64,000 bases of DNA, from the sequence record NC_021529.2; one strand, 5' to 3'. Numbering within the stretch: position 1 is the stretch's first letter; each line of letters starts with the position of its first letter. The notes beneath the pieces were generated by a model. That model saw only the letters and a list, made by a program, of their open reading frames with translations. It ran no database searches and was not told the DNA's origin. The translations under genes and the position numbers were made by a program. Positions 10,583 to 39,456 of this stretch are shown here, piece after piece.

Positions 10583-11689
10583 ATGAAAAATTTAAAATCA
10601 TTTATGGAAGAGCTTCAGCTAGTAACTGAAGTCTTCGTTCGTGGCGGTCGCCCACGAAACGGGTCTAAAGTTCTTGCAAACGGCAAGAACATTTGGGTGT
10701 GGAACAACGATAGAGAGTTCGAACGACTTGCGCCATTCATCAATCGCGAGTTAGGCACAGACTTTGACGAAGAATACGACGTTGATCAATGGTACGAAGA
10801 AGGCGCACAAGCGGTATACGCGACGATTGAGAACGGAAGACTAGACATGACTGGCATTTCTTCTTATCGCCCTGCTGTAACGTCTGACACACTTCGCAAG
10901 ACTGTTAAAGCTCTTAACCTGAACGGTGTTACACGTCGCACGCAATCATTCAACCCAGATTACGATGAAGTTGAACACGATTTCGAGACCAGTCGTTACG
11001 AATTCAACAAGAAGCTGTCACAGAAAACGTTCTATCACGGAACATCAACTACATTTATTGAGTCTATGCTGAAGTTCGGCTTGAAACCAAACCCAGGCGA
11101 AGCTCAATTTGACAACATTGAACATCAAGACAAAGTTTTCATCACTACTGAACTTGATAAAGCAATGTTCCATGCGACTCACTCGGCGAACAAAAACAAT
11201 TCGTTCCCTGTTATCATCGAGCTACGCATACCAGATGAAGCAAAACTTGTGTCTGACTATGATGTTGTAATTGACACAATGGGTGCTGATTCAGACGAAG
11301 CATTAGAACTTGGGTATTCAGACATATTCTATCAGTTGCCAAATTATCGCGGTGACGGTAGCAAATATGATGATATGCATCAAAGATTCGGCAAGCGTCT
11401 CGACAAATTGAGCACTCGCGTTGGTATCTTCGGGTACAAAGGTCGTATTCCTGCAAGTCATTTCAATTTCATCTTCGCTGACGGTGATGTTATCGAAGAG
11501 TCTATGCCTGAAATGTACTGGGAAATGGATGGCGAATTCGATATGTCAGAAATGCGTACGGAATCAGTAAATCATCGTTCATTCGACTACTGGGATCAAT
11601 TCAAGCCAGATAAATTCATTGCACACTTCGAAGATCTTTGGGATGATCTCAGAGACGAAGAAGATGAAGATGAAGACGATTGGGACTAA
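10583..11689 (+). CDS. Late protein with an ADP-ribosyltransferase/Tpt1-like core and acidic tail, possible internal head protein
   Basis: CATAAATA late promoter 10555-10562; MKNLKSFMEE N-terminus; FYHGTS..GLKP..VFIT motif. Confidence 0.6.
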   Translation: MKNLKSFMEELQLVTEVFVRGGRPRNGSKVLANGKNIWVWNNDREFERLAPFINRELGTDFDEEYDVDQWYEEGAQAVYATIENGRLDMTGISSYRPAVTSDTLRKTVKALNLNGVTRRTQSFNPDYDEVEHDFETSRYEFNKKLSQKTFYHGTSTTFIESMLKFGLKPNPGEAQFDNIEHQDKVFITTELDKAMFHATHSANKNNSFPVIIELRIPDEAKLVSDYDVVIDTMGADSDEALELGYSDIFYQLPNYRGDGSKYDDMHQRFGKRLDKLSTRVGIFGYKGRIPASHFNFIFADGDVIEESMPEMYWEMDGEFDMSEMRTESVNHRSFDYWDQFKPDKFIAHFEDLWDDLRDEEDEDEDDWD

Positions 11690-26282: not shown

Positions 26283-26343
26283 AATATTTCTCTTGCTTAT
26301 TGAATAAATACTATCATACAGTTCAAACAAAGAGAAGTCAACA

Positions 26344-26715
26344 ATGAATGATGAAAAAATCGTATCTTTTGAAGAATACCTAAATGAAGGGTGGTTTGAA
26401 AGACAATGGTCGCGTTATAAAGCAGGAGCCGACTCTAGAAGCATCAAGAAGCTCGCTAAGATGCATACAAAGCTTCTGCATATAGAACAGAAGGCAAAGC
26501 AAAACAAGTACCGCTACGACGTTGTGCGCTACAATTACGAGCATATTAAAATGAATGTGCTTGACGCGAAGCGACTTATCAACAAACTTCGATACAAGAA
26601 AGGAATTAGTCAAGAGCTAGTTCAGGCAATGGATAAACTAGATCTTGAATTGGATAGATTGAATGACTTTGCGGTCGAGGGATTGCATATGCTCATGATT
26701 AATCACAAGCTATAA
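26344..26715 (+). CDS. Late small protein, internal-protein-like
   Basis: AATAAATA about 26303; VSFEEYLNE motif; own terminator. Confidence 0.6.
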   Translation: MNDEKIVSFEEYLNEGWFERQWSRYKAGADSRSIKKLAKMHTKLLHIEQKAKQNKYRYDVVRYNYEHIKMNVLDAKRLINKLRYKKGISQELVQAMDKLDLELDRLNDFAVEGLHMLMINHKL

Positions 26716-26744
26716 GAAAGCCCCAATATGGGGCTTTTTTGTTT

Positions 26745-26957
26745 TCAGTGTGAGTGGCGTAACTTTTTCTCGATCATACGATCTACAATCGTGGAGTACA
26801 GTAAATGTTCTTTGTAATATTTCTCATCAACTCGGTTGCATTGGAATTGTCGAAAATCTTTGCGAAGACGTGCAATAAATTTATTAAGTGCTTTGCGTAC
26901 TTTGCAAACTTCAGATAGTTCCATGCTCTTTAGTGTTTCTTCAGAAAGTATTTCCAT
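26745..26957 (-). CDS. Hypothetical protein
   Basis: ORF with GAGGTG SD. Confidence 0.6.
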   Translation of the reverse strand: MEILSEETLKSMELSEVCKVRKALNKFIARLRKDFRQFQCNRVDEKYYKEHLLYSTIVDRMIEKKLRHSH

Positions 26958-26986
26958 GATTGTTCACCTCTTAGTTAATAGAATAC

Positions 26987-27031
26987 GGGAGACACGGGAA
27001 TCGAACCCATTGCCTTGACCACATATCTCCC
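26987..27031 (-). ncRNA. tRNA-like minihelix (acceptor + T arm, no anticodon arm)
   Basis: GGGAGAT/GTCTCCC and ATGGG-TTCGATT-CCCGT. Confidence 0.5.
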
Positions 27032-27053
27032 ACTGAGAAGTTACGCCAATCTG

Positions 27054-27278
27054 TTAATGTGCTAATCTCATCAAACGGCGCATACGTTCTCTTTCTGATA
27101 GCTCATCTAGATTTTCTGTTTTCACCTCTTTGACTTCTTCTGGCTGCTCATCGTCAGATGTTTTTTTCTTAGCATCTGGACCGATGTTGTCCCATAATGG
27201 GCTATTACGCCAGTTTTCGTTGTATCCGTTACCTAGCCCACGACCTTCGCGTGCGTGTGATTTTCTGTGTTGACTCAT
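27054..27278 (-). CDS. Small hypothetical protein
   Basis: ATGA-coupled to the upstream frameshifted ORF. Confidence 0.6.
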   Translation of the reverse strand: MSQHRKSHAREGRGLGNGYNENWRNSPLWDNIGPDAKKKTSDDEQPEEVKEVKTENLDELSERERMRRLMRLAH

Positions 27279-27474
27279 TCGTCGGAATTCTTCGTTACTT
27301 GTTTTACTACACCAGCGGCAGCAACAGCACCTGCTACTTTCGCACCCGTTTTCGCTTTCTTAGCTACAGACTTTGCTTTTGATTTCACCTTGTCACGCAG
27401 CTTACGTTTTTGTTATCGACTGGTTTCTTGTCTTCAATTTCCGACATGAATACGTCGAATGTTTTATCACTCAT
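27275..27474 (-). CDS. Internal-protein-like Lys/Ala-rich protein with a 1-nt frameshift in an A5 run
   Basis: MSDKTFDVFMSE... joins KRKLRDKVKSKAK...; TAAATA promoter 27507-27513. Confidence 0.5.
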
Positions 27475-27548
27475 GGCAATTCTCCATCTGTGTTTGAGTA
27501 TAACTGTATTTAGTATCAAAATAACTTAATTTGCAAACTCCATAAACA

Positions 27549-27572
27549 AAAAACCCGCTCAATGGCGGGTTC
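27549..27572 (-). terminator. Rho-independent terminator
   Basis: AACCCGC-CATTGA-GCGGGTT followed by a T run on the minus strand. Confidence 0.75.
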
Positions 27573-27587
27573 TAATGTGCAATCAAC

Positions 27588-27858
27588 AGACATTCGAGAA
27601 GTGTTTTTTCGTCTTTCCTTAAATCTCATTTGACTAGCTTGTTTCTTATACAAGCAAGCATTTGCGTATTCAGCGCAACGCCAATTCCGTTTAACGATAC
27701 GAAAATCGTCGAAGTCATTTCCTACTTCACGAGAACACCGTTCTCTTAGCTGTCAGGCTTACGTCATCACTGAGAATGCAGCTAGTACGCCCCGTTCGTT
27801 ACCGCTAGATAACTATTAATTTTAGCTTCTTTGATTAGAATATTGCTGTACAATGTCT
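27588..27858 (-). ncRNA. Long ACAGCAA-family structured RNA 1
   Basis: AGACATT/AATGTCT closing stem, TACAGCAA, GACGAAAAAACACTTC shared with 31537-31746. Confidence 0.6.
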
Positions 27859-27869
27859 TATTGCGAATT

Positions 27870-27958
27870 TGGCGGAGATACTGGGAGTCGAACCCAGAGA
27901 ACGCTATTAACGTCCGACACCTTAGCAGGGTGCTGTCATACCATTAGACCATATCTCC
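27870..27958 (-). tRNA. tRNA-Ser(GCT)
   Basis: Cloverleaf, loop CTGCTAA, long variable arm, CCA. Confidence 0.92.
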
Positions 27959-27960
27959 AG

Positions 27961-28140
27961 TTATTTCTTACCGCGTTCTGCTTTGCTAATTTCAACAGCC
28001 GCGATTTGTGCGTTTGCTTCTTCTTCAGTATCATGTGTACCAAGTACACGACCTTTAGATGAAAGAGCAACCCACTTGTTACCACGCTTCTGTACTTTCT
28101 CAGTCAGTTCGTGATATTCATCAAACGTTTTCAATTTCAT
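27961..28140 (-). CDS. Internal-protein-like small late protein
   Basis: MKLKTFDEYHELTE; TATAAATA at 28166-28173. Confidence 0.65.
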   Translation of the reverse strand: MKLKTFDEYHELTEKVQKRGNKWVALSSKGRVLGTHDTEEEANAQIAAVEISKAERGKK

Positions 28141-28461
28141 GTCTAATCCCTCAGTTAGTTTATAATATTTATAACTGAGCAACTTTTAATCAGTGGCATG
28201 CTGCTTTCATGCTCAGACATATATTTGCTCTTAATGCAGGCGTATGCCACGCGCAGCGCAGATCCCATTTGATAATTTAACGACTTACGGGACTCTTAGC
28301 AAGTCTACACATAGCCTTTCAGCTATATCTTCTTTTAAGACCATAGTGTCGTACGGTCTAATCAAGACAATTCTCACTGCCTATCGTCAGTCTAGAACTC
28401 ATAAATGAGGGAAGAAAATGACGGTCACTGACAGAAGTCATGCATAGCACGTTCTTGAATT

Positions 28462-28529
28462 TGGTAGTCACGAGGGAATCAAACCCTCACTCAACGAGTT
28501 TTAGAGGCTCAGAGCAATCATTGTGACCA
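28462..28529 (-). tRNA. Atypical tRNA with CTA anticodon (amber/Pyl-like) or pseudo-tRNA
   Basis: 7-bp acceptor, loop CTCTAAA, T arm, CCA; D arm degenerate. Confidence 0.5.
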
Positions 28530-28763
28530 TTATAATTTGAATCCGATGCTCAACACCCAACGAGATTCATTAGCTTTAGTCGTGCGGTGATAGAACTTAT
28601 CAGCACGAAACCCAAACAACCTATCTTTGATGATATGAAATGCACCATTACAGATGAATTCACCACCAGATTTAGGTTTCTTTACAACCCAATTTATTCT
28701 ATAATGAAATTTACCAGGGTCTTTGTGTTTAGGAATATATGAGTCTTTAGGATAATGAAACAA
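28530..28763 (-). CDS. Small protein with 2OG-Fe(II) oxygenase-like motifs
   Basis: IPKHKD, R.N.V, H...K...SR.VLSIG. Confidence 0.45.
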   Translation of the reverse strand: MFHYPKDSYIPKHKDPGKFHYRINWVVKKPKSGGEFICNGAFHIIKDRLFGFRADKFYHRTTKANESRWVLSIGFKL

Positions 28764-28887
28764 GTAGAAATCAAAGTGTTTGCAATAAAACAGCGTGAAT
28801 ACTCGATATCCAGTTGCCCATTTATCTAATCCCCATTTAAATCTTCTTAACGTTGGTTTTTGAGTCTACATACAAATTACCTTTAAT

Positions 28888-28964
28888 TGGTGCCCAACCC
28901 GAGATTCGAACTCGGATCATCTAGTGTTTGAAACTAGCGCCTCTGCCAATTGGACTAGTTGGGC
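28888..28964 (-). tRNA. tRNA-Leu(CAA)
   Basis: Loop TTCAAAC, CCA, short variable loop. Confidence 0.88.
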
Positions 28965-28970
28965 GAAATA

Positions 28971-29047
28971 TGGTACGCATGGGCGGATTCGAACCGCCAT
29001 CCCTGAGAATTTAAACCTCATGCCTCTGCCAATTGGACCACATGCGC
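28971..29047 (-). tRNA. tRNA-Leu(TAA)
   Basis: Loop TTTAAAT, CCA. Confidence 0.88.
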
Positions 29048-29249
29048 GTTATTGTGTCGTTATGTCGATGTTCACGACACTGCTAGGCTGCCGAGTTATC
29101 AACTCATTATACTAGCCAAGGGCTTCTTACACACTAATCACTACTCGCAAGTAGCAATTCAAACATGCTCAGTTCCGAGCGATTAACCTCTTAGACCGTA
29201 GTCTCGAACCATAACCGACCCCTATGCACATCCAACTTGTGCATCGTCT

Positions 29250-29474
29250 TTAATACTGATCTTGCAACCCGCACTTAGTGCATGTCGCAGTAATTAATTC
29301 AAACCCGCTATTATCAGCAACCATTTCATGTTCACAATCAAGTTGCTTTCTCAATTCATGCAAGTGAGCTTTTTGCTCATGCAACTTCACAGAAGTTCTT
29401 CGAATGCTATCTTCAGTCAAGCGAATTGAAAATTTAACAGATCTGTCTAAGTATTCTTTAACTTCTGGGTTCAT
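29250..29474 (-). CDS. Hypothetical coiled-coil protein with Cys/His motif
   Basis: Start after tRNA-Cys; CEH...CTKC. Confidence 0.55.
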   Translation of the reverse strand: MNPEVKEYLDRSVKFSIRLTEDSIRRTSVKLHEQKAHLHELRKQLDCEHEMVADNSGFELITATCTKCGLQDQY

Positions 29475-29491
29475 GATATAGCTCTCAAAAT

Positions 29492-29565
29492 TGGAGCCCG
29501 AACAGAGAATCGAACTCTGACCGCGGGATTTGCAATCCCTCATACTTCCATTATACGATTCGGGC
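29492..29565 (-). tRNA. tRNA-Cys(GCA)
   Basis: Loop TTGCAAA, U73, CCA. Confidence 0.88.
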
Positions 29566-29570
29566 GTTGT

Positions 29571-29873
29571 TTAGTATGTCGCAAAACGAATTTTAATGTT
29601 TTGCTCATCTACTGGCAATACTGCATACAGATAAAAATGCGCAAATTCAGACATTTCATTTTTATGTCGTTTTATCTGCTCATGTTCTATTGCTCGTTCA
29701 ATCAACCAATAGAAGTCAATTCTGTGCATATCATCAGTAATTGGTATAATCAATGAGCGAACTTCAACGTGCGCTGCGTTTAATGAACTACCATGTATAA
29801 CTTCACCAGTTCTACTATCAACAGCATTACACGGACAACAGATTAAGTGAATTTTCTTACCATGAATATACAT
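29571..29873 (-). CDS. Hypothetical protein
   Basis: ORF between tRNAs. Confidence 0.5.
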   Translation of the reverse strand: MYIHGKKIHLICCPCNAVDSRTGEVIHGSSLNAAHVEVRSLIIPITDDMHRIDFYWLIERAIEHEQIKRHKNEMSEFAHFYLYAVLPVDEQNIKIRFATY

Positions 29874-29965
29874 ACGTACCTACGGAAAATAAACTAGTGC
29901 TTCGTGATTAACTAGACCTTCGATTTCTTCTTCAGTCATAATATATTTCTCATTCAAATGTACTT

Positions 29966-30040
29966 TGGGGTGACCGACGGGAATCGAACCCGCGAGTTCC
30001 TGAATCACAATCAGGGGCATTACCACTCTGCCACAGCCAC
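29966..30040 (-). tRNA. tRNA-His(GTG)
   Basis: Loop TTGTGAT, C73, CCA; position -1 is T. Confidence 0.88.
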
Positions 30041-30115
30041 ACCAAAGTACACTTAATGAACTTTGGGATACATTTACGTGGATCATTCGAGCGTAGCACT
30101 ACTACGCTAGTAAGT

Positions 30116-30427
30116 TTATTTGATTTTTGATAGCATTTTATGCATATCTTTCGTGTTGTTTAGAAAGTCAACATAATGAGCAAAATCAACGTCTCTGTCG
30201 TATTGACGAACTAGAGAACTAGTCTTTGCTAGCCACTCATCAGTGATGATATCATTCAACCCGAAGTTTTTCTTCAGAGCCATTAAGCGTCGCTCGTAAT
30301 CATCACCGTCGATGTTCATTGGATCAGGAGCGATATAGTCAGAAAGGATCTCAGCATTTTTGTCGATACGTTTCATATCGAACTTTTCATCAAGTTGAGA
30401 TTCAGTGTATTCTTTAAATGATTGCAT
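30116..30427 (-). CDS. Internal-protein-like late protein
   Basis: MQSFKEYTESQLDE; AATAAATA upstream. Confidence 0.6.
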   Translation of the reverse strand: MQSFKEYTESQLDEKFDMKRIDKNAEILSDYIAPDPMNIDGDDYERRLMALKKNFGLNDIITDEWLAKTSSLVRQYDRDVDFAHYVDFLNNTKDMHKMLSKIK

Positions 30428-30451
30428 AGTTTTATCTCTTGTCTTAAAAAC

Positions 30452-30694
30452 TTATTTATTGTTCTTGAGATAGATACTATCACTCGAAAGCTCTCTTGTA
30501 AACATATTTTTGAAATAAATTTCAATATCGTCTGAAGTAGTAGAAGATTCAATGCTCAATGCAAGTTCTAGAATCTTACCACGTTTATAACCGGCACGCC
30601 AACAGTCAAACATAAGTCTGTCCATTTGTTTCAGTTTTTCAACTTGATTTGGGTGTACGTATTCGTGAGATTCTAGCAAAGCTGGTGTGTTCAT
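30452..30694 (-). CDS. Hypothetical protein
   Basis: ORF with GAGA SD. Confidence 0.55.
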   Translation of the reverse strand: MNTPALLESHEYVHPNQVEKLKQMDRLMFDCWRAGYKRGKILELALSIESSTTSDDIEIYFKNMFTRELSSDSIYLKNNK

Positions 30695-30719
30695 AATATA
30701 ATTCTCATTTAAAAATGAA

Positions 30720-30793
30720 TGGTAGCCCCTGTCGGATTCGAGCCGACTCTACTTCTGTGTAAGAGAAGCGTACTCCCATTATACTAAGGGGCT
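30720..30793 (-). tRNA. tRNA-Val(TAC)
   Basis: Loop CTTACAC, CCA. Confidence 0.88.
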
Positions 30794-30794
30794 A

Positions 30795-30938
30795 TTAGAC
30801 TGGATAATTGTATTTCCATTGATCTGGATCTGGTCTACCACAACGAGTACACGATGTGCCTAACCAATTTTTCTGACCACAAACACAAGTGTAACCTTGT
30901 TGTTCGAAGTTTTCACCACCGATACTAAGAATTTTCAT
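30795..30938 (-). CDS. 47-aa zinc-ribbon-like peptide absent from the ORF track
   Basis: MKILSIGGENFEQQGYTCVCGQKNWLGTSCTRCGRPDPDQWKYNYPV. Confidence 0.45.
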   Translation of the reverse strand: MKILSIGGENFEQQGYTCVCGQKNWLGTSCTRCGRPDPDQWKYNYPV

Positions 30939-30953
30939 ACAATCACCAAAAAT

Positions 30954-31028
30954 TGGAGCGGGTACACGGACTCGAACCGAGACGAACGACTTGGAAGGAC
31001 ATCATGCTACCAATTACATCATACCCGC
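30954..31028 (-). tRNA. tRNA-Gly(TCC)
   Basis: Loop CTTCCAA, U73, CCA. Confidence 0.85.
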
Positions 31029-31320
31029 ATTGTTTAATCTGAAGCGTCGAACAAATCACGTATTGCACGTAGATTCGTAAGCTCTACTGTAAGTGTTCTA
31101 ATAAAGAACGGGTTAGTCTCTTTAGCGAGACGATTTTCAACATAACGAATTTTATCGCGTATGTTGCCCTTGCTTAGTGTAAAGTAGTCATGCTTCTTTC
31201 TCTTCGTTTGAAGTTAGTATTTGGAAAACTTGTTCATCGATTTCTTCTTGAAGTAGCCACTGTTGATAAACATATTCGGCATATTCTAAAGTTTCATTCA
31301 TAAACAAGCCTTTTTGAATT

Positions 31321-31396
31321 TGGTGGAGACACCGATACTCGAAATCGGATCTAACGCCGTATGAAAGCGCCGCTCTACCACTTGAGCTACATCTCC
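31321..31396 (-). tRNA. tRNA with CAT anticodon (elongator Met probable)
   Basis: Loop TTCATAC, CCA. Confidence 0.82.
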
Positions 31397-31536
31397 ATAT
31401 CTTGGTTTTGTATGTTTTACATGACGATAACCAGAAACGTGCATAATAATGCCACGTGATACATCCTATATCACGGCTAACTGAGTTAGCATATCGTGCC
31501 TTGCGGCTGTAGTGTCGTTTCCGACGAATTAAGTAC

Positions 31537-31746
31537 AGACAATACCGAAGTGTTTTTTCGTCTTTGACATGAATCGGAGTTGACTATCTTATTGGTTCTC
31601 AACAAGCAAATATCGTCTGTTTCAGCGACGCGCCTATCTGACTATTTCTAGACAGAGAGAATCTTTCCTTTCAAGCTGCACCGAAGCACTTCCCAGGTTA
31701 AGACAATCACCTTTTTAAGTAAGTAATTGGTTGCTGTATATTGTCT
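31537..31746 (-). ncRNA. Long ACAGCAA-family structured RNA 2
   Basis: AGACAATA/TATTGTCT closing stem, ATACAGCAACCAATT, GACGAAAAAACACTTC. Confidence 0.6.
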
Positions 31747-31811
31747 AACTATCTGCACTCGTACGAATCTCGAAAGGTATCGTAGTTGTCGTGCAGAAGT
31801 TCTTAAATCTT

Positions 31812-32048
31812 TTACTCGTCCATCAATCCGTCGTAGAAATCATCCAATGCTGAATGCACACGACGTAAACGATCAACGTTCCCACGACCGTAGTTCATGT
31901 CAGTTTCACGCGCCCAATCCATCATTGCACTAGATTGCATGATTGAATAAGCCTTGTGAAAGAAGTCTTCAAACTGTTCTGACGATTCAAACTCACGTGG
32001 TAATGTTCTTGCTTCGTTTAATTTCTTAAACTCGTTATATGTTTTCAT
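31812..32048 (-). CDS. Internal-protein-like late protein
   Basis: MKTYNEFKKLNE; TATAAATA at 32070-32077. Confidence 0.7.
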   Translation of the reverse strand: MKTYNEFKKLNEARTLPREFESSEQFEDFFHKAYSIMQSSAMMDWARETDMNYGRGNVDRLRRVHSALDDFYDGLMDE

Positions 32049-32085
32049 GAGATTCTCCTATTAAAAACATATTTATACAAGAACT

Positions 32086-32161
32086 TGGCATCCCCACTAG
32101 GATTCGAACCTAGAACCACATCCTTAGAAGGGACGTGCTCTTCCAATTGAGCTATGAGGAC
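32086..32161 (-). tRNA. tRNA-Arg(TCT)
   Basis: Loop CTTCTAA, CCA. Confidence 0.92.
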
Positions 32162-32235
32162 ATTAAAAAGATTCGATCCATAAGCTCGTGCAGATGATGG
32201 TAGTAAAGAGAATCCGCGCTCATGTGATCGAAATT

Positions 32236-32311
32236 TGGTGGAAATGACGAGACTCGAACTCGCAACCTCCTACTTGCAAGGCAGGTGCTCTCCCAATTGA
32301 GCTACATCCCC
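32236..32311 (-). tRNA. tRNA-Ala(TGC)
   Basis: Loop CTTGCAA, G3:U70, CCA. Confidence 0.92.
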
Positions 32312-32713
32312 ATTATACAGTCTGTGAACAATCGCATGGCAATTCGGACACAGTGGTATTAAATTTGTTATGTCATTATTCGTGCGGTCGTTGTCTATAT
32401 GATGTACATCAATTACTACATCAAAACCACAATTTGCGCACTTCTTTTCATAATGCTGAAAGCAAATAGTCGTATAGCATTTGGCATTATCGTTCCAGTA
32501 TGCTTGTCTATTGTTCGCACATGAGCGACTACAGAAACGTGAACGTTCATACGCTTTTGTATTTCGTCTGCCAACGAAGATATAAAGTTCACCACAACAC
32601 TCACATCGTTTAGTATGCGTTTTAACTGCACCTAGTCTTCTATCGACTGCTTCTGCTCTGCGTTGTTTGTATTGTTCTGTATGATATTTACCGTTATTCA
32701 TGATGATTCCCAT
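32270..32713 (-). CDS. HNH endonuclease with zinc motifs, overlapping tRNA-Ala
   Basis: CECCG, FCSRSC, VHHIDNDRTNN..NL..LCPNCH. Confidence 0.85.
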   Translation of the reverse strand: MGIIMNNGKYHTEQYKQRRAEAVDRRLGAVKTHTKRCECCGELYIFVGRRNTKAYERSRFCSRSCANNRQAYWNDNAKCYTTICFQHYEKKCANCGFDVVIDVHHIDNDRTNNDITNLIPLCPNCHAIVHRLYNGDVAQLGEHLPCK

Positions 32714-32794
32714 ATTAGTTTAAAATATAGGATCTCATGCTAACTGAGTAGATTCCACCACTTACTTTTGAAAGAAGCAAGAAACTCATATTTA

Positions 32795-33004
32795 TTACAA
32801 CTGCGTGATTGTGATATGATCCCAGCCATATAGACCATCAAGCTCTTCAATCGGCTCACACACAATGTCAGAAATATACTCAGCAACTTTTGCTTCAATT
32901 TCTTCATCAGATAGTTTTTCATCAACGGAAAAAGCATCTTCGTTATTGTTGCCACCGAAATAACCGCCAATGTCATATTCACACCATATTGAAATATATT
33001 TCAT
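32795..33004 (-). CDS. Acidic hypothetical protein
   Basis: GAGA SD; start after tRNA-Thr. Confidence 0.55.
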   Translation of the reverse strand: MKYISIWCEYDIGGYFGGNNNEDAFSVDEKLSDEEIEAKVAEYISDIVCEPIEELDGLYGWDHITITQL

Positions 33005-33029
33005 GTTATTCTCACAGTTGTTTTGAAAA

Positions 33030-33105
33030 TGGTGCCCTGACACGGATTTGAACCGCGAACCTGCTCATTACAAGTGAGCTGCACTGCCAGTTGTGCTATC
33101 AGGGC
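33030..33105 (-). tRNA. tRNA-Thr(TGT)
   Basis: Loop CTTGTAA, CCA. Confidence 0.92.
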
Positions 33106-33110
33106 GATAC

Positions 33111-33223
33111 TGAGTGTCATTACTTGCGCCATCCGAGACTAGAGATACCAACTCTAAACGGGATTCGAACCCGAAACATTTCTTTTATCGGAAGAATTTG
33201 TAATTGTTTGCTGAAAACACTCA
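33111..33223 (-). ncRNA. ACAGCAA-family RNA enclosing an Ile-type anticodon arm and a T arm
   Basis: TGAGTGT/ACACTCA; CAGCAAACAATT; TTCTT-CCGATAA-AAGAA; CGGG-TTCGAAT-CCCG. Confidence 0.65.
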
Positions 33224-33231
33224 ATGGTATT

Positions 33232-33305
33232 TGGCTGGGATATAGAGATTCGAACTCTAACTGACGGAATCAAAATCCGTAGTGCTACCATTACACCATA
33301 TCCCA
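33232..33305 (-). tRNA. tRNA-Gln(TTG)
   Basis: Loop TTTTGAT, U1:A72, CCA. Confidence 0.92.
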
Positions 33306-33312
33306 ATTGTTC

Positions 33313-33561
33313 TTATCGCTGAAAATAGCCGTGACTCATTTTGATCTTATCGGCAAATTCGCGAAGCATACGGTCTGCAAGTTCAAACGATAACTCTTTA
33401 TCAGCGTCACCTTGTTGCTGCAAATCGTGTGCAATTTTACTTCGAAGCTCTTCTGGCTTGTACCCGAACACTTGTTTACCCCAGTGTTCTTTAACTCTAT
33501 GGTACGATTCCATCGAAATGCTATCTCGTCTAGCTTCTTGAAATTCTGAAAATGTTTTCAT
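33313..33561 (-). CDS. Internal-protein-like late protein
   Basis: MKTFSEFQE; TATAAATA at 33585-33592. Confidence 0.65.
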   Translation of the reverse strand: MKTFSEFQEARRDSISMESYHRVKEHWGKQVFGYKPEELRSKIAHDLQQQGDADKELSFELADRMLREFADKIKMSHGYFQR

Positions 33562-33601
33562 GATTATTACCTTTCGTAAAATCATATTTATAAATTATCT
33601 T

Positions 33602-33677
33602 TGGCGGAACCGACGGGGCTCGAACCCGCTTCCTTTCCCGTGACAGGGGAATATGCACCCAGTTACACCTCGGCTCC
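33602..33677 (-). tRNA. tRNA-Asp(GTC)
   Basis: Loop CTGTCAC, G73, CCA. Confidence 0.9.
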
Positions 33678-33896
33678 CCAAAGACAACTTACGTTGCTTT
33701 GTGCTCGTGCAAACCAAACACTAGCTAAACGACTTCTTGATTTCTTAGTTGTACTATACATTCCCTGCTAAGGGCATCATCGTTCTTGTTTTTAGCAAAT
33801 GTCATGAAAGTGAGATCTTGTTATGCAGGAGGTTTCAAATCTCTGCATACAAGCAGACATAACAACCAATGCTCTCATACATTGTCATGGTCAAAT

Positions 33897-33972
33897 TGGC
33901 GCTTCATGTTGGGCTCGAACCAACGACTCACGGATTAACAGTCCGTCACTCTACCGACTGAGTTAATGAAGC
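33897..33972 (-). tRNA. tRNA-Asn(GTT)
   Basis: Loop CTGTTAA, CCA. Confidence 0.92.
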
Positions 33973-33977
33973 AAATA

Positions 33978-34052
33978 TGGCGACGAAGGAGAATTTCGAA
34001 ATCTCGACCTGCGGGTTAACAGCCCGCTGCTCTGCCTCTGAGCTACTCCGTC
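33978..34052 (-). tRNA. tRNA-Asn(GTT), second copy
   Basis: Loop CTGTTAA, CCA. Confidence 0.88.
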
Positions 34053-34064
34053 ATTAAATTAAAC

Positions 34065-34123
34065 AGTAATCGTTTTTTGCTTTTTTAAAATAAAAGTTTT
34101 GTATTGTTTGCTGCAAGATTACT
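34065..34123 (-). ncRNA. Minimal ACAGCAA-family RNA with a Lys-type anticodon stem-loop
   Basis: AGTAATC/GATTACT; CAGCAAACAAT; CTTTT-ATTTTAA-AAAAG; CAAAAAAC. Confidence 0.6.
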
Positions 34124-34128
34124 TAAAC

Positions 34129-34202
34129 TGGCAGGGACATAGAGATTCGAACTCTAACGAACGGGTTTGGAATCCGTCATGCTGCCGTTACATCATGTCC
34201 CT
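34129..34202 (-). tRNA. tRNA-Trp(CCA)
   Basis: Loop TTCCAAA, G73, CCA. Confidence 0.88.
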
Positions 34203-34208
34203 AAAATT

Positions 34209-34282
34209 TGGTAGCCCCAGACAGACTCGAACTGTCAACGTGCGATTATCGGTCGCGTGTTTTACCGTTAAACTATGGAGCT
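34209..34282 (-). tRNA. tRNA-Ile(GAT) with C33
   Basis: Loop CCGATAA, CCA. Confidence 0.85.
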
Positions 34283-34344
34283 AAAGTGAGCACCGAAGTG
34301 CTCTTGTTAATCGGTTAAGTGACTAAACTCCCCGGTTAACAAAT

Positions 34345-34443
34345 TGGCGGAAGACTAGGGATTCGAACCCTAACAGGCATTCCCATGCCCCGACGGTTTT
34401 CAAGACCGTTGCCGCTACCCCGAATCTTTCGGCTAAGCCTTCC
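34345..34443 (-). tRNA. tRNA-Ser(TGA) with enlarged D loop
   Basis: Loop CTTGAAA, long variable arm, CCA. Confidence 0.82.
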
Positions 34444-34449
34444 TTAATT

Positions 34450-34526
34450 TGGATGCGTGAGGTTGGATTCGAACCAACGACCTCCAGCTTATGAGACTGG
34501 TGAGCTGACCACTGCTCTACTCCGCA
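34450..34526 (-). tRNA. tRNA-Met(CAT), initiator-like D arm, bulged acceptor
   Basis: Loop CTCATAA, CCA. Confidence 0.7.
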
Positions 34527-34536
34527 TTTATTCAAC

Positions 34537-34623
34537 AGCTTGCGTTCTTTGGTCTGTTTATCGCTGTCTGAGTCATGCCCGTCGAGCGATCAATAGATTA
34601 AGTATTTTTGCAGTATGCAAGCT
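34537..34623 (-). ncRNA. Variant ACAGCAA-family RNA
   Basis: AGCTTGC/GCAAGCT; ATACTGCAAAAAT; ATCGCT/AGCGAT hairpin; CAAAGAAC. Confidence 0.45.
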
Positions 34624-34628
34624 AAATC

Positions 34629-34715
34629 TGGTGGTCCGCCTAGGACTCGAACCTAGAAGCCCGATTAAGGGCGAGGGATTTACAATCCCCTGACTTACCA
34701 TTAGTCTAACGAACC
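34629..34715 (-). tRNA. tRNA-Tyr(GTA)
   Basis: Loop TTGTAAA, long variable arm, CCA. Confidence 0.9.
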
Positions 34716-34721
34716 AGAATT

Positions 34722-34796
34722 TGGTTCACCCGACGAGATTCGAACTCGCGCATACTTCCTTGAAAGGGAAGTGACCTACCATTAGTCTACGGGTGA
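34722..34796 (-). tRNA. tRNA-Glu(TTC)
   Basis: Loop CTTTCAA, CCA. Confidence 0.88.
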
Positions 34797-34860
34797 ATTA
34801 TATTGTATATTGATTTGCAAGCTAATCAACTTGCAAAGCGATACACAATGTATCTGAATT

Positions 34861-34934
34861 TGGTGGGTCCACAGAGATTCGAACTCTGACTGAAGGATTA
34901 AAAGTCCCATATGCTACCATTACATCATAGACCC
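34861..34934 (-). tRNA. tRNA-Lys(TTT)
   Basis: Loop CTTTTAA, CCA. Confidence 0.9.
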
Positions 34935-35022
34935 AATTTGATTTTCATGTTAAGAGCGTTTGCAAAATAACTCAAAACTAAAATCTCTTGCTTGATTTAA
35001 CTCTTACAAACAAGCTATAATT

Positions 35023-35098
35023 TGGTGCACCCTACGGCTATCGAGACCGTGACCTGCGGGACTTCAATCCGCCGCTCTACCAACTGAGCTAAGGGTGC
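35023..35098 (-). tRNA. tRNA-Phe(GAA), atypical T loop
   Basis: Loop TTGAAGT, T loop CTCGATA, CCA. Confidence 0.78.
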
Positions 35099-35150
35099 AA
35101 TGTGCGAAGATTTATGTTTTAAGTCAGCTATCGCATACAGACTACATGTT

Positions 35151-35228
35151 TGGTACGCATGAAGAGATTCGAACTCTTAACTTCTGGTTTCTAAGACCAG
35201 TGCCTCTGCCAGATTGGGCTACATGCGC
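35151..35228 (-). tRNA. tRNA-Leu(TAG)
   Basis: Loop CTTAGAA, CCA. Confidence 0.9.
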
Positions 35229-35253
35229 ATTAAATTGTAAACTTCTTTTCTTC

Positions 35254-35357
35254 ATTATACATGATGTTTTTATCGTTGTAAACATCTTTTTTAATTTATT
35301 TTGAAGAACTTCGTTTTTCTATGTGTTAATACTAACACTCACTCAAGACATCTTAAA
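35254..35357 (-). promoter_or_regulatory. Two tandem early promoters driving the tRNA cluster
   Basis: TTTACA-17-TATAAT (35282-35254) and TTTAAG-17-TAGTAT (35357-35329). Confidence 0.7.
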
Positions 35358-35434
35358 CACTAATTTGTGAAAAAGTTCGTTAAATTCTATCGTCTCGACA
35401 GTACTTAACGAGATACGGTCCTAAGCGTATCAAC

Positions 35435-35510
35435 TGGCACCCAATACAAGATTCGAACTTGTAACCTTCGCCTTCGTAGGGCGCTGCTCTTCCAATTGAG
35501 CTAATCGGGC
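35435..35510 (-). tRNA. tRNA-Arg(ACG)
   Basis: Loop CTACGAA, CCA. Confidence 0.92.
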
Positions 35511-35517
35511 ATTAATA

Positions 35518-35594
35518 TGGTCCGTGACAAGCGATTCGAACGCTTAACTTCTCCGCCCCAAACGGAGTACTCTACCAGATTGAGCTAGTCACGG
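35518..35594 (-). tRNA. tRNA-Pro(TGG)
   Basis: Loop TTTGGGG, C1:G72, A73. Confidence 0.92.
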
Positions 35595-35603
35595 TTTTTA
35601 AAT

Positions 35604-35679
35604 TGGTCGGTGTGAAGAGATTCGAACTCTTTCCGCTCGCTCCCAAAGCGACCATGCTCCCATTAAACACCACACACCG
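35604..35679 (-). tRNA. tRNA-Pro(TGG), second copy
   Basis: Loop TTTGGGA, C1:G72, A73. Confidence 0.85.
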
Positions 35680-35992
35680 TTTGTTCTTTAACTTTGTTTA
35701 TGATACTCTGCAATCAAAGTACGATAAACAAAATTTTCAATTTATTTTCATTTTATTCAGATAATAAAAAGGACGCTATTTGCGTCCTCAAGTATACTTC
35801 TATGTTATACTATCGGACTACAAGAGGGGATCCCAGTTTTGTTTCGCACACGGATTCGCTAGATACACGAATTCTGAGCGCAGAAAATCGCTGCGTAAAA
35901 TCTCAGTTGAATGTGTAATCGAATGTGTCATTGAATGCTCTCTTGCAAAAATTAAAATTGTTTTTCTTCTTTATTTTATTTATATTCGTGTT

Positions 35993-36901
35993 TCAATCGT
36001 ATAGACAAATTTTACCATGTTTTTCAAAATATTTTAAAATTTCTTCATATTCAACGTCAGAAAGTGTGCGAAATTCACGAAATCCGTCACCAGTAGAAGC
36101 GTCGTAAGGAAGTCTTGTGTATTTTTTATGCAAGTACGATTCATGCATACGAGCATCATTAACAGTTATAGACAATAAATTGTGTATATCAGTCCCACGT
36201 TTTCTCGCACATTCATACACTCTCTGTTTGACACGATAACTATTGCAAATTCCAATCTTACAATTTCCAGCATCATCAGTCCACATGTATAACCCATCGT
36301 GATTTCGATTTGAACATCCCGGACACCCAGAATAAAACTTCAGATTGGCTATTACAGGATTCCACGTCAATTCACACACATGACATGTATGCTCCCATGT
36401 CTTCCCAGAATTAGTGCCCCACGCATCGTTGTAAGGCGAAACAGTCAATGAAGGGTGTCTAGATTTTATAAATTCAACATATTCATCGTACGTATTCTTA
36501 CGACGGCACTCGGGACAGGAATATTTAGAAGTCCACGATACATTTCGCGAGTATTCACTACCACAGTCATGACAATGAAATTCAACTCTATTTCTGCCTC
36601 CTTTACCGTTACCAATATGAACGTATTCATGTTTGATAAGTTCGATTTGAGGATATTTTTCCTCGTGGGTTATGCGAAATTCTTCAAATTTCTCGTTGCG
36701 AACACATCGTTCACATGGCACAGTACCGTGCTTTGAAATTCGAGAATCTGACACTATATGAAAATCACCGCAAACAATACATTCTAGATAGTGATATGAA
36801 TCTAGAATTCTATGTTCCCCAAACCCATCAATAATATCACAACTTTGCTCAATTTCTGGTTTGAGTTCGGGATCTGAACATGAGCACTTATACGATATCA
36901 A
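35993..36901 (-). CDS. Zinc-ribbon repeat + GIY-YIG/T5orf172-type endonuclease
   Basis: Several CxxC pairs; LYMW..CKIGI..R..E..LH..Y..G..E.F. Confidence 0.7.
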   Translation of the reverse strand: MISYKCSCSDPELKPEIEQSCDIIDGFGEHRILDSYHYLECIVCGDFHIVSDSRISKHGTVPCERCVRNEKFEEFRITHEEKYPQIELIKHEYVHIGNGKGGRNRVEFHCHDCGSEYSRNVSWTSKYSCPECRRKNTYDEYVEFIKSRHPSLTVSPYNDAWGTNSGKTWEHTCHVCELTWNPVIANLKFYSGCPGCSNRNHDGLYMWTDDAGNCKIGICNSYRVKQRVYECARKRGTDIHNLLSITVNDARMHESYLHKKYTRLPYDASTGDGFREFRTLSDVEYEEILKYFEKHGKICLYD

Positions 36902-37181
36902 AGATTCTACAGCACGTCTAGCACCGTTTGTTTTCTTCAGTTCAATTTCACCAAAAGCAATTCACAGTCACTCTATCAATCTCAGGTGACATTTCTAATT
37001 TAGTCACACTTAGTCGTTCGAGTCCGGAAATGATAAATTCATAGCGCGCCAATTTAGATTTAGTTGGCGCGCTCATGCAGCCATTAGTTTTAGAGTGATT
37101 GTCAATTATAATCATAACATCTCATTCAATTATGAAGTTCTCAATATAATGTATCACAATTGACATATACTTGCAAATTAA

Positions 37182-37415
37182 TTAACCTAGATGCTTACGC
37201 TTATTCATTTCAACTAGAATTTCATCGTTGTAATGCTTGTTAAGCTGTACAAACTTCTTGTGTTGATCTTCTGTCAACTCATTCGTGTCATTTAGGTGCT
37301 TCAAGAACCCAAGAGGCTTACGAAACGACTTACGATACTCGTTCAGACGTTCATCTGTTAGATTATGCAACTGTTTCGGAGTAAGCAGTACTTTATTAAT
37401 ATCAAAATTACTCAT
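37182..37415 (-). CDS. Hypothetical protein
   Basis: GAGG SD. Confidence 0.6.
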   Translation of the reverse strand: MSNFDINKVLLTPKQLHNLTDERLNEYRKSFRKPLGFLKHLNDTNELTEDQHKKFVQLNKHYNDEILVEMNKRKHLG

Positions 37416-37440
37416 GTGTAACCTCTCTTTGTTTGTAAAA

Positions 37441-37556
37441 TGGTAGTCGGGGCTGGATTCGAACCAGCGACCACGTGCTTAACAGGCAATTGAAAGAGTG
37501 CTGGAGCGATACTTGACAGTATCATTCTTCGTGCTCTACCACTGAGCTACCCGACT
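37441..37556 (-). tRNA. tRNA-Asn(GTT) with a 41-nt insertion between nt 28 and 29
   Basis: Removing 37489-37529 gives a 75-nt cloverleaf with CGTGC/GCACG stem and CCA. Confidence 0.75.
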
Positions 37557-37561
37557 GTAAA

Positions 37562-37852
37562 TTATATGTTGAACTCACCACGTTCGAACGCTGCTAAGAA
37601 CTCAGCAGTTGAATCAAATGCAATGTATTCTTTACCAGTATGTTCTTTTGTTCGAACTCTAACTTTACCACCGCGAACTGCAACTTCGAATTGCCCGTGT
37701 TTAACATGAGCGTCTTTACGAACTGAACCTGACATCATTTTCTCAAGTTTCTTCGCAAAGTTTACGTCGTTGACGGTAGTAGGATTCTGTGGCATAAGTT
37801 TATCCCAACGAGAATCGCGCATTTCTGTAACAAACTCATCGAAAGTTTTCAT
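37562..37852 (-). CDS. Internal-protein-like late protein
   Basis: MKTFDEFVTE; CATAAATA at 37875-37882. Confidence 0.7.
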   Translation of the reverse strand: MKTFDEFVTEMRDSRWDKLMPQNPTTVNDVNFAKKLEKMMSGSVRKDAHVKHGQFEVAVRGGKVRVRTKEHTGKEYIAFDSTAEFLAAFERGEFNI

Positions 37853-39341: not shown

Positions 39342-39456
39342 GAGGTGAAGTGCAGGACTCGAACCTGCGACATCCGGCGTGCATGTGAATGCAGCATGAA
39401 ATCTTATCAGACTTCTTTTTTGGGCCGGCGCTCTAACCAACTGAGCTAACTTCACC
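39342..39456 (-). ncRNA. tRNA-like RNA with a 45-nt two-hairpin insert replacing the anticodon loop
   Basis: Canonical D and T arms, CCGGC/GCCGG stem, G-1:C73, ends TCA. Confidence 0.65.

Follow-up and report, generated by a model that had tools for sequence, protein, structure and literature searches.

Late genes with a T4-type capsid-targeting leader among the tRNA genes of Vibrio phage nt-1 probably encode internal head proteins

Introduction

In phage T4, the internal proteins (IPs) of the head are small proteins with unrelated bodies that share an N-terminal capsid-targeting sequence (CTS), and one of them, IPI*, inhibits GmrSD and is an anti-restriction protein. Polymorphic IP genes defined by the CTS reportedly lie in hyperplastic regions, and the studies of Repoila in 1994 and Comeau in 2007 are said to have covered T-even and pseudo-T-even coliphages. 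Here we describe a set of genes of this kind in Vibrio phage nt-1, a KVP40-like relative of T4 with a genome of 247.5 kb. The window that we analyzed is a stretch of 64,000 nucleotides (nt), corresponding to bases 62001-126000 of NC_021529.2, with a 100% match across the 12.5 kb used as query and the entire window recovered in the nt-1 genome, and leader-tagged open reading frames (ORFs) are scattered in it through the nt-1 tRNA array. This array holds 28 tRNA genes, every one on the minus strand, with small ORFs interspersed, and the GenBank annotation of these small ORFs is hypothetical throughout in both nt-1 and KVP40. We propose, with a probability of roughly 0.78, that the set represents T4-type internal head proteins, which would be synthesized late, docked on the core by the leader, cut by the protease gp21 and enclosed in the head.

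The CTS and polymorphic IPs are already known in T4-like phages, and PMC3012670 and PMC4122927 give summaries of the CTS-defined polymorphic IP genes in their hyperplastic regions. In the nt-1 genome paper, which comes from the group behind that work, IPs are named for PST and T4 and none for nt-1 or KVP40. What is new here is the recognition of such proteins in the KVP40/nt-1 group, the size of the set, the arrangement of cassettes among tRNA genes with one promoter each, a cargo that includes enzyme-like proteins, and the agreement with a particle proteome already published. Unlike the coliphage IP work, the present set belongs to vibriophages of the KVP40/nt-1 group.

Results and Discussion

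Seven leader-tagged ORFs in the tRNA array

The seven ORFs are given below with their lengths in amino acids (aa), N-termini and upstream late boxes. A slash marks the end of the leader.

37562..37852, minus strand: ORF196, 96 aa, MKTFDEFVTE/M; box CATAAATA at 37882-37875
33313..33561, minus strand: ORF192, 82 aa, MKTFSEFQE/A; box TATAAATA at 33592-33585
31812..32048, minus strand: ORF188, 78 aa, acidic, N-terminus MKTYNEF, leader MKTYNEFKKLNE/A; box TATAAATA at 32077-32070
30116..30427, minus strand: ORF184, 103 aa, N-terminus MQSFKEY, leader MQSFKEYTESQLDE/K; box AATAAATA at 30460-30453
27961..28140, minus strand: ORF179, 59 aa, N-terminus MKLKTFDEY, leader MKLKTFDEYHELTE/K; box TATAAATA at 28173-28166
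27275..27474, minus strand: ORF178 (27385-27474) with ORF177, Lys/Ala-rich gene of about 66 aa, N-terminus MSDKTFDVF, MSDKTFDVFMSE...; box ACTAAATA at 27514-27507
26344..26715, plus strand: ORF174, 123 aa, basic, MNDEKIVSFEEYLNE/G with the motif VSFEEYLNE; box AATAAATA at 26303-26310

All seven N-termini named in the original prediction are present at the positions given for them. Five are clear copies of the CTS, while two come with caveats: ORF178 is only the front half of a split gene, and ORF174 has a longer leader and is encoded on the opposite strand. ORF188, ORF192 and ORF196 fit the motif exactly, and ORF179, ORF178 and ORF184 fit with an offset of one or two residues or with Q-S where the motif has K-T. 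ORF174, the sole plus-strand member, has five extra N-terminal residues and fits only from residue 8; its pattern aromatic-x-x-aromatic-L-x-E is retained in the homologue of phage 6E35.1a at 35% identity. As for the split gene, a shift of frame within an A5 run (GATAACAAAAACG) divides it into two halves, ORF178 (29 aa) and ORF177, and the same Lys-rich gene is unbroken in CZ01 (66 aa), KVP40 (68 aa), 6E35.1a (74 aa) and QD01. Because nt-1 was read by pyrosequencing, according to its genome paper, the split is probably a homopolymer error in the nt-1 record.

The consensus that emerges when 26 leaders of T4, nt-1, phi-Grn1 and 6E35.1a are placed in an anchored alignment is M-K-T-F-x-E-F-L-x-E-A. 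Real nt-1 genes contain the core motif [KQ][TS][FY]x[ED][FY] seven times, at residues 2-5 in each case, against 0.025 N-terminal occurrences expected (Poisson P about 1e-15); chance cannot yield this N-terminal motif. Moreover, the conserved leader residues are encoded by differing synonymous codons (ACA/ACT/ACG, TTT/TTC and GAA/GAG), which points to selection at the protein level. Two further ORFs with somewhat similar N-termini, ORF255 (MFSFNEY) and ORF247 (MEYTEY), were excluded because they have neither a cleavage site nor other support.

Behind the leader the proteins are unrelated, as had been claimed, with no mutual similarity beyond residue 18, and the bodies are mostly orphans. Those of ORF184 and ORF188 are acidic, and several others are basic with pI 9.6-10. 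A search of ten leader-bearing proteins against Pfam and PHROGs returned no functional match, and homologous-protein searches with ORF196 and ORF184 each recovered the query alone. In the ESM Atlas, nothing usable was found for ORF184, and ORF179 gave only a DUF2188-like lead. Weak HMMER matches of ORF196 to inverse-autotransporter Ig-like domains and Kelch repeats were discarded, because repeat number inflates such scores.

Private late promoters and position among the tRNA genes

The original prediction had also assigned to each gene its own TAAATA late box, and such a box was indeed found 27-39 nt before the ATG in all seven, in perfect form (TATAAATA) in ORF179, ORF188 and ORF192. The region has 22 minus-strand ORFs, and a TAAATA box lies at -27 to -38 in all six motif ORFs and in none of the 16 others (Fisher P = 1.3e-5); a correctly spaced Shine-Dalgarno site precedes each motif ORF. 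The whole 247.5-kb genome contains only 16 copies of TATAAATA and 39 of ATAAATA, and most of the remaining boxes precede gp18, gp22, gp23, gp24, gp25, wac, tail fibre genes, alt, uvsW and segD. Since the boxes precede known late genes and nt-1 encodes gp55, the box would act as a T4-type late promoter, and from its position and the presence of gp55 the seven ORFs are predicted to be made late in infection. Genome-wide, 7 of 11 leader candidates have an ATAAATA box (P about 1e-15). A scan of the tRNA-array region for sigma-70 promoters stayed at background level.

Several of these genes are discrete insertions relative to KVP40. ORF196 corresponds to an insertion of about 320 bp between ORF197 and a tRNA-like element of 113 nt, with its late box overlapping the stop codon of ORF197 and the element beginning 5 nt downstream. 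ORF192 sits between tRNA-Asp and tRNA-Gln in an insertion of about 300 bp, and ORF184 forms another of about 300 bp between the ORF185 homologue and tRNA-His. The gap from the gene end to the next tRNA or tRNA-like gene is only 2-7 nt for ORF179 (27958-27961), ORF192 (33305-33313) and ORF196 (37556-37562); tRNA-Ser, for example, begins 2 nt past the ORF179 stop codon. Late transcripts of these three genes would therefore run into tRNAs, and processing by RNase P would set the 3' end of their mRNAs.

This arrangement bears on two other explanations. In one, some small ORFs would be spurious, and the late promoters would merely transcribe the downstream tRNA genes late. The close abutment of ORF179, ORF192 and ORF196 on tRNA or tRNA-like genes would fit it, as would a perfect TATAAATA at 35984 (minus strand) with no convincing ORF behind. 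We nevertheless regard it as extremely improbable, given the rightly spaced Shine-Dalgarno sites in every motif ORF, the conservation of the ORFs and leaders in CZ01 and other relatives, the detection of two of the families as proteins and a motif beyond chance. The other is that the common N-terminus is no protein signal and belongs to a cassette of DNA or mRNA, made up of late promoter, leader and first codons, that serves translation efficiency or acts as a recombination junction for shuffling small genes among tRNAs. In its favor, promoter, Shine-Dalgarno site and first codons move together as discrete insertions relative to KVP40, and A-rich second codons favor translation; recombination in CTS-coding DNA was reportedly also proposed for the T-even IP loci by Repoila et al. 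in 1994. On the other hand, synonymous codons vary at every conserved residue, the aromatic positions and the Glu are retained in homologues at 23-50% identity, ORF006 and ORF403 (described below) carry the leader with no late box nearby, and leader-bearing proteins are present in particles, so that we consider this second explanation very unlikely.

Comparison with the T4 internal proteins and processing machinery

The T4 sequences quoted in the original prediction are correct: the ipII and ipIII products that we fetched begin MKTYQEFIAE/A, and that of ipI begins MKTFKEF...ITE/A. In BLASTP comparisons of the nt-1 leader proteins with the T4 IPs, the alignments are limited to residues 1-12 against 1-12, with 58-86% identity. 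Mutagenesis in T4 has assigned targeting to residues 4 and 7 and processing to residues 8 and 10 (reviewed in PMC9026906), and both the aromatic targeting positions 4 and 7 and the processing positions 8 and 10 are invariant in the nt-1 leaders. The leaders end in VTE (ORF196), LNE (ORF188 and ORF174), LTE (ORF179), LDE (ORF184) or MSE (ORF178). The nt-1 proteins share with the T4 IPs the consensus MKT(Y/F)xEF(I/L)xE/A, a Glu motif at the leader end, small size and unrelated bodies. Unlike in the leader, the nt-1 body sequences share nothing with the T4 IP bodies. A further T4 protein, gp61.1 (54 aa; L032:667-831, minus strand), begins MKTFKEFIKE; it is a fourth CTS-like N-terminus in T4 and is annotated as hypothetical.

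As in T4, a gp21-type protease and a gp22 core are encoded in nt-1, together with gp67 and gp68. The nt-1 gp21 shares 108 of 212 residues with T4 gp21 (51% identity). The site GLNE/A of nt-1 gp23 aligns with the T4 maturation site FLTE/A, and its LNE also closes the leaders of ORF188, ORF006 and ORF174. Similar x-x-E/A N-termini are found in nt-1 gp68 (MKFITE/A) and gp22 (MQIKEQLLE/A).

The location beside tRNA genes and 57B is likewise common to both phages. The T4 order is tRNAs, trna.2-4, ipI, 57B, 57A, 1, 3, 2, 4, and the nt-1 order is tRNAs with leader ORFs, 57B, a chaperone gene, 1, 3 ... 2, 4, so the leader ORFs are syntenic with ipI. Several differences are also seen. Each nt-1 array ORF has a near-consensus late promoter, whereas the 60 nt upstream of T4 ipI, ipII and ipIII contain no TATAAATA. 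Unlike in T4, several nt-1 ORFs are wedged right in front of tRNA genes. Furthermore, the number of such proteins is at least 11-12 per genome in nt-1 against 3-4 in T4.

Leader genes beyond the array

Genome-wide leader scans of nt-1 extended the family by the first four genes below, all outside the window; the fifth, ORF157, has a related leader.

L003:4819-5292, minus strand: ORF006, MKIKTFDEY...LNE/A, then a hydrophobic Gly/Ala-rich stretch
L003:7243-7596, plus strand: ORF010, MKTFNQFVSE, with TATAAATA
L007:4159-4806, plus strand: ORF332, MKKFDTFLTE/V
L007:44851-45159, plus strand: ORF403, MKTFNEFLAE/A
10583..11689 of the window, plus strand: ORF157, 368 aa, PARP/Tpt1-like, looser leader MKNLKSFMEELQLVTE/V; box CATAAATA, 20 nt upstream

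ORF006 and ORF403 have no late box nearby. A reading of ORF332 as a methyltransferase, guessed from a DxGxG-like motif, was unsupported by Pfam and by a PDB sequence search and was dropped.

The central domain of ORF157 matches the Pfam PARP family with an E-value of 3e-5, which is below threshold. A profile of 21 ORF157 homologues matches the YHGT...GLKP motif of the RNA 2'-phosphotransferase Tpt1/KptA, with YHGT invariant. Across the same 21 homologues an [LI]-x-E near residue 16 is almost invariant, and distant family members start with MKKFQDFLAE or MKHIKRFNEFILNE. ORF157 resembles T4 Alt, a packaged and injected ADP-ribosyltransferase (ART), in its predicted late expression, in belonging to the ART superfamily, in its N-terminal [LI]-x-E leader and in having a homologue in particles beside Alt. 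Unlike Alt, it falls in the H-Y-E (PARP/Tpt1) branch. It is a candidate for a second packaged ART beside Alt.

The gene adjoining alt, nt-1 ORF324 (L006:46660-47547, plus strand), encodes a protein that begins MIIFEHQDSLVE/A, and TATAAATA lies 23 nt upstream of it. In 6E35.1a particles the homologue VP6E351A_0094 is abundant (16 and 61 counts), and paralogues occur elsewhere in the KVP40 and 6E35.1a genomes.

Leader-bearing proteins in the particles of 6E35.1a

Particles of the relative 6E35.1a have been analyzed by mass spectrometry (6E351A in PMC12028318), with 94 proteins listed in Table S4 and GenBank tags available through Table S8; internal proteins are nowhere mentioned in that paper. 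We scanned the whole 6E35.1a genome with the leader pattern and obtained eight candidates, for three of which the mapping of tags was still open at the time of the scan. Seven of the eight motif-predicted proteins were found in particles, against a background of 94 detected among 442 genes (P = 1.1e-4). The candidates and their spectral counts in the two replicates are as follows.

p0246: MKTLAEFLGE, ORF192 homologue, counts 12 and 13
p0245: MKTLQEFLAE/A, no nt-1 homologue, counts 6 and 10
p0252: Lys-rich, ORF178/177 homologue, counts 14 and 15
p0027: MELKTFDEF...LDE/A, ORF006 homologue, counts 7 and 21
p0039: L033:20004-20597, minus strand, 197 aa, MKKFNEFAKELEE/A followed directly by YHGTS, counts 12 and 17
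p0106: MAKSLNDFLTE/V, ORF332 homologue, counts 31 and 79
p0276: PARP/Tpt1-like, ORF157 homologue, counts 18 and 4
p0055: MKTLVNY, the weakest pattern match, no nt-1 homologue, not detected in particles

Absence from virions had been named as the finding that would speak against the original prediction. In the 6E35.1a data, the homologues of ORF192 and of ORF178/177 are present in particles, and that of ORF174 is marginal (counts 3 and 0). The ORF192 homologue p0246 is 50% identical, ends its leader with E/A, is preceded by TATAAATA and occupies the same inter-tRNA site as in nt-1. For p0039, tblastn found no homologue in nt-1 or KVP40; from its sequence, it may be another small ART-like cargo.

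Distribution among relatives

The families differ widely in how far they are shared.

Core: ORF006, ORF174, ORF332, ORF157 and the Lys-rich gene, in nt-1, KVP40 and 6E35.1a; ORF174 is also kept in phi-Grn1 and QD01
Core: ORF179, kept with its promoter in nt-1, KVP40 (0311), phi-Grn1, QD01 and CZ01, absent from 6E35.1a
Variable: ORF192, in nt-1, CZ01 and V. crassostreae phages
Variable: ORF196, in nt-1 and CZ01; phi-Grn1, ValKK3 and XZ1 have a distant homologue (MKTFGEFLIE, 30% identity) at that site
Variable: ORF010 and ORF403, in the nt-1 clade
Narrowest: ORF184 and ORF188, in nt-1 and CZ01 only

This patchy, cassette-like spread resembles that of the T-even IP genes. As with the IPs of hyperplastic regions in T4-like phages, the nt-1 genes are variable, orphan, cassette-like and recognised only by the CTS, and close relatives differ in which of them they carry, as T-even phages do, with nt-1 and CZ01 on one side and QD01, KVP40 and 6E35.1a on the other.

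Interpretation and proposed mechanism

The sequence itself shows a common leader, a late promoter for each gene, bodies unrelated to one another, synteny with ipI and the genes for protease and core, and the published proteome of 6E35.1a places leader-bearing proteins in particles. Capsid targeting is thus well supported. A T4 head-loading tag on unrelated late genes means that, by analogy, the nt-1 leader proteins are probably cargo injected with the DNA. In the mechanism that we propose, a cassette of about 300 bp, in which an ORF follows a gp55-type late promoter and a Shine-Dalgarno site, would be inserted between tRNA genes. Its product would be synthesized late with an N-terminal leader of about 10-17 residues (M-K-T-F-x-E-F-L-x-E) corresponding to the T4 CTS, and this leader would dock the protein on the scaffolding core (gp22, gp67, gp68) during prohead assembly. 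The prohead protease gp21 would then cut after the Glu of [LIV]-x-E and leave the mature body free in the head. At the next infection the body would exit with the DNA and act ahead of any phage gene expression.

The late genes with a T4-type capsid-targeting leader proposed in the original prediction are borne out, but its array of injected anti-defence proteins is not, as no body resembles IPI or a known anti-defence protein. In particular, BLASTP against T4 ipI aligns only the leader and gives no similarity of bodies to IPI*. Cleavage and injection as in T4-type IPs are for nt-1 predictions from sequence. We infer leader cleavage, injection and anti-defence function; ejection and a role in anti-defence or host take-over would follow from the analogy with IPI* and Alt and from the orphan, patchy character of the variable members.

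Several points weigh against reading the set as internal head proteins with such functions. The particle evidence comes from the relative 6E35.1a, and ORF179, ORF184, ORF188 and ORF196 have no homologue in 6E35.1a. The 6E35.1a particles were precipitated with polyethylene glycol, and since a few replication enzymes are listed with low counts, abundant late proteins may have co-precipitated. The tables of PMC12028318 give spectral counts without N-terminal peptides, and leader cleavage therefore stays putative. The leader site of ORF192 is FQE, which is atypical, and the leaders of ORF174 and ORF157 are longer and less canonical. Finally, the comparison of the bodies with known anti-defence proteins, through Pfam, PHROGs and BLASTP against T4 ipI, gave no resemblance.

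The most serious rival would make certain members, above all those that are conserved and basic, structural or DNA-associated components of the head and not effectors. In its full form, all would be prohead-targeted assembly or core components like gp67, gp68 and IPIII, degraded or DNA-bound in the head and not injected. The N-termini of nt-1 gp68 and gp22 are similar to the leaders, a DNA-neutralising role would suit the conserved, Lys-rich ORF178/177 family as well as several basic bodies with pI 9.6-10, and T4 IPIII influences head morphogenesis (PMC9026906). However, the variable ORF184, ORF188, ORF192 and ORF196 are orphans in only one or two phages, which suggests accessory functions and not assembly; ORF184 and ORF188 are acidic; and the enzyme-like members of the cargo, ORF157 and Alt, suggest that it acts in the host. 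We therefore judge this rival unlikely and retain T4-type internal head proteins as the preferred reading.

A broader proposal is more tentative, with the chances slightly against it. KVP40-like and nt-1-like vibriophages would carry an unusually large, sequence-predictable head cargo of at least 12 leader-tagged proteins, including a PARP/Tpt1-like enzyme, a Gly/Ala-rich hydrophobic protein and many orphans. The variable members would be plug-in cassettes of promoter and ORF placed directly before a tRNA gene, and the tRNA array would also be a landing pad at which phages exchange injected proteins for counter-defence or take-over.

With the leader, the packaged and possibly injected proteins of a whole group of marine vibriophages with broad host range can be read from sequence, and members of this group are under study for phage therapy in aquaculture. 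It assigns a function to genes that are hypothetical in every record of this phage group, and it accounts for several hypothetical proteins in the published virion proteome. It also provides a shortlist of orphans as good candidates for take-over or anti-defence in the first minute of infection, namely ORF179, ORF184, ORF188, ORF192, ORF196, ORF010 and ORF403, to which ORF157 and ORF332 are added.

Other features of the array

Two tRNA-like elements of 112-113 nt were called by Rfam and missed by ARAGORN.

37444-37556, minus strand: tRNA-like element; its KVP40 counterpart is annotated as a 116-nt pseudo-tRNA
39344-39455, minus strand: tRNA-like element

Both appear to be tRNAs carrying an insertion of about 40 nt. 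Behind the perfect box at 35984, the only frame is one of 37 aa, 45 nt downstream, which is kept in CZ01, and a terminator-like hairpin follows at 35789-35769 (minus strand). The stretch 35984-35769, which lies immediately upstream of the tRNA-Pro/Pro/Arg block, may be transcribed late into an RNA of about 200 nt.

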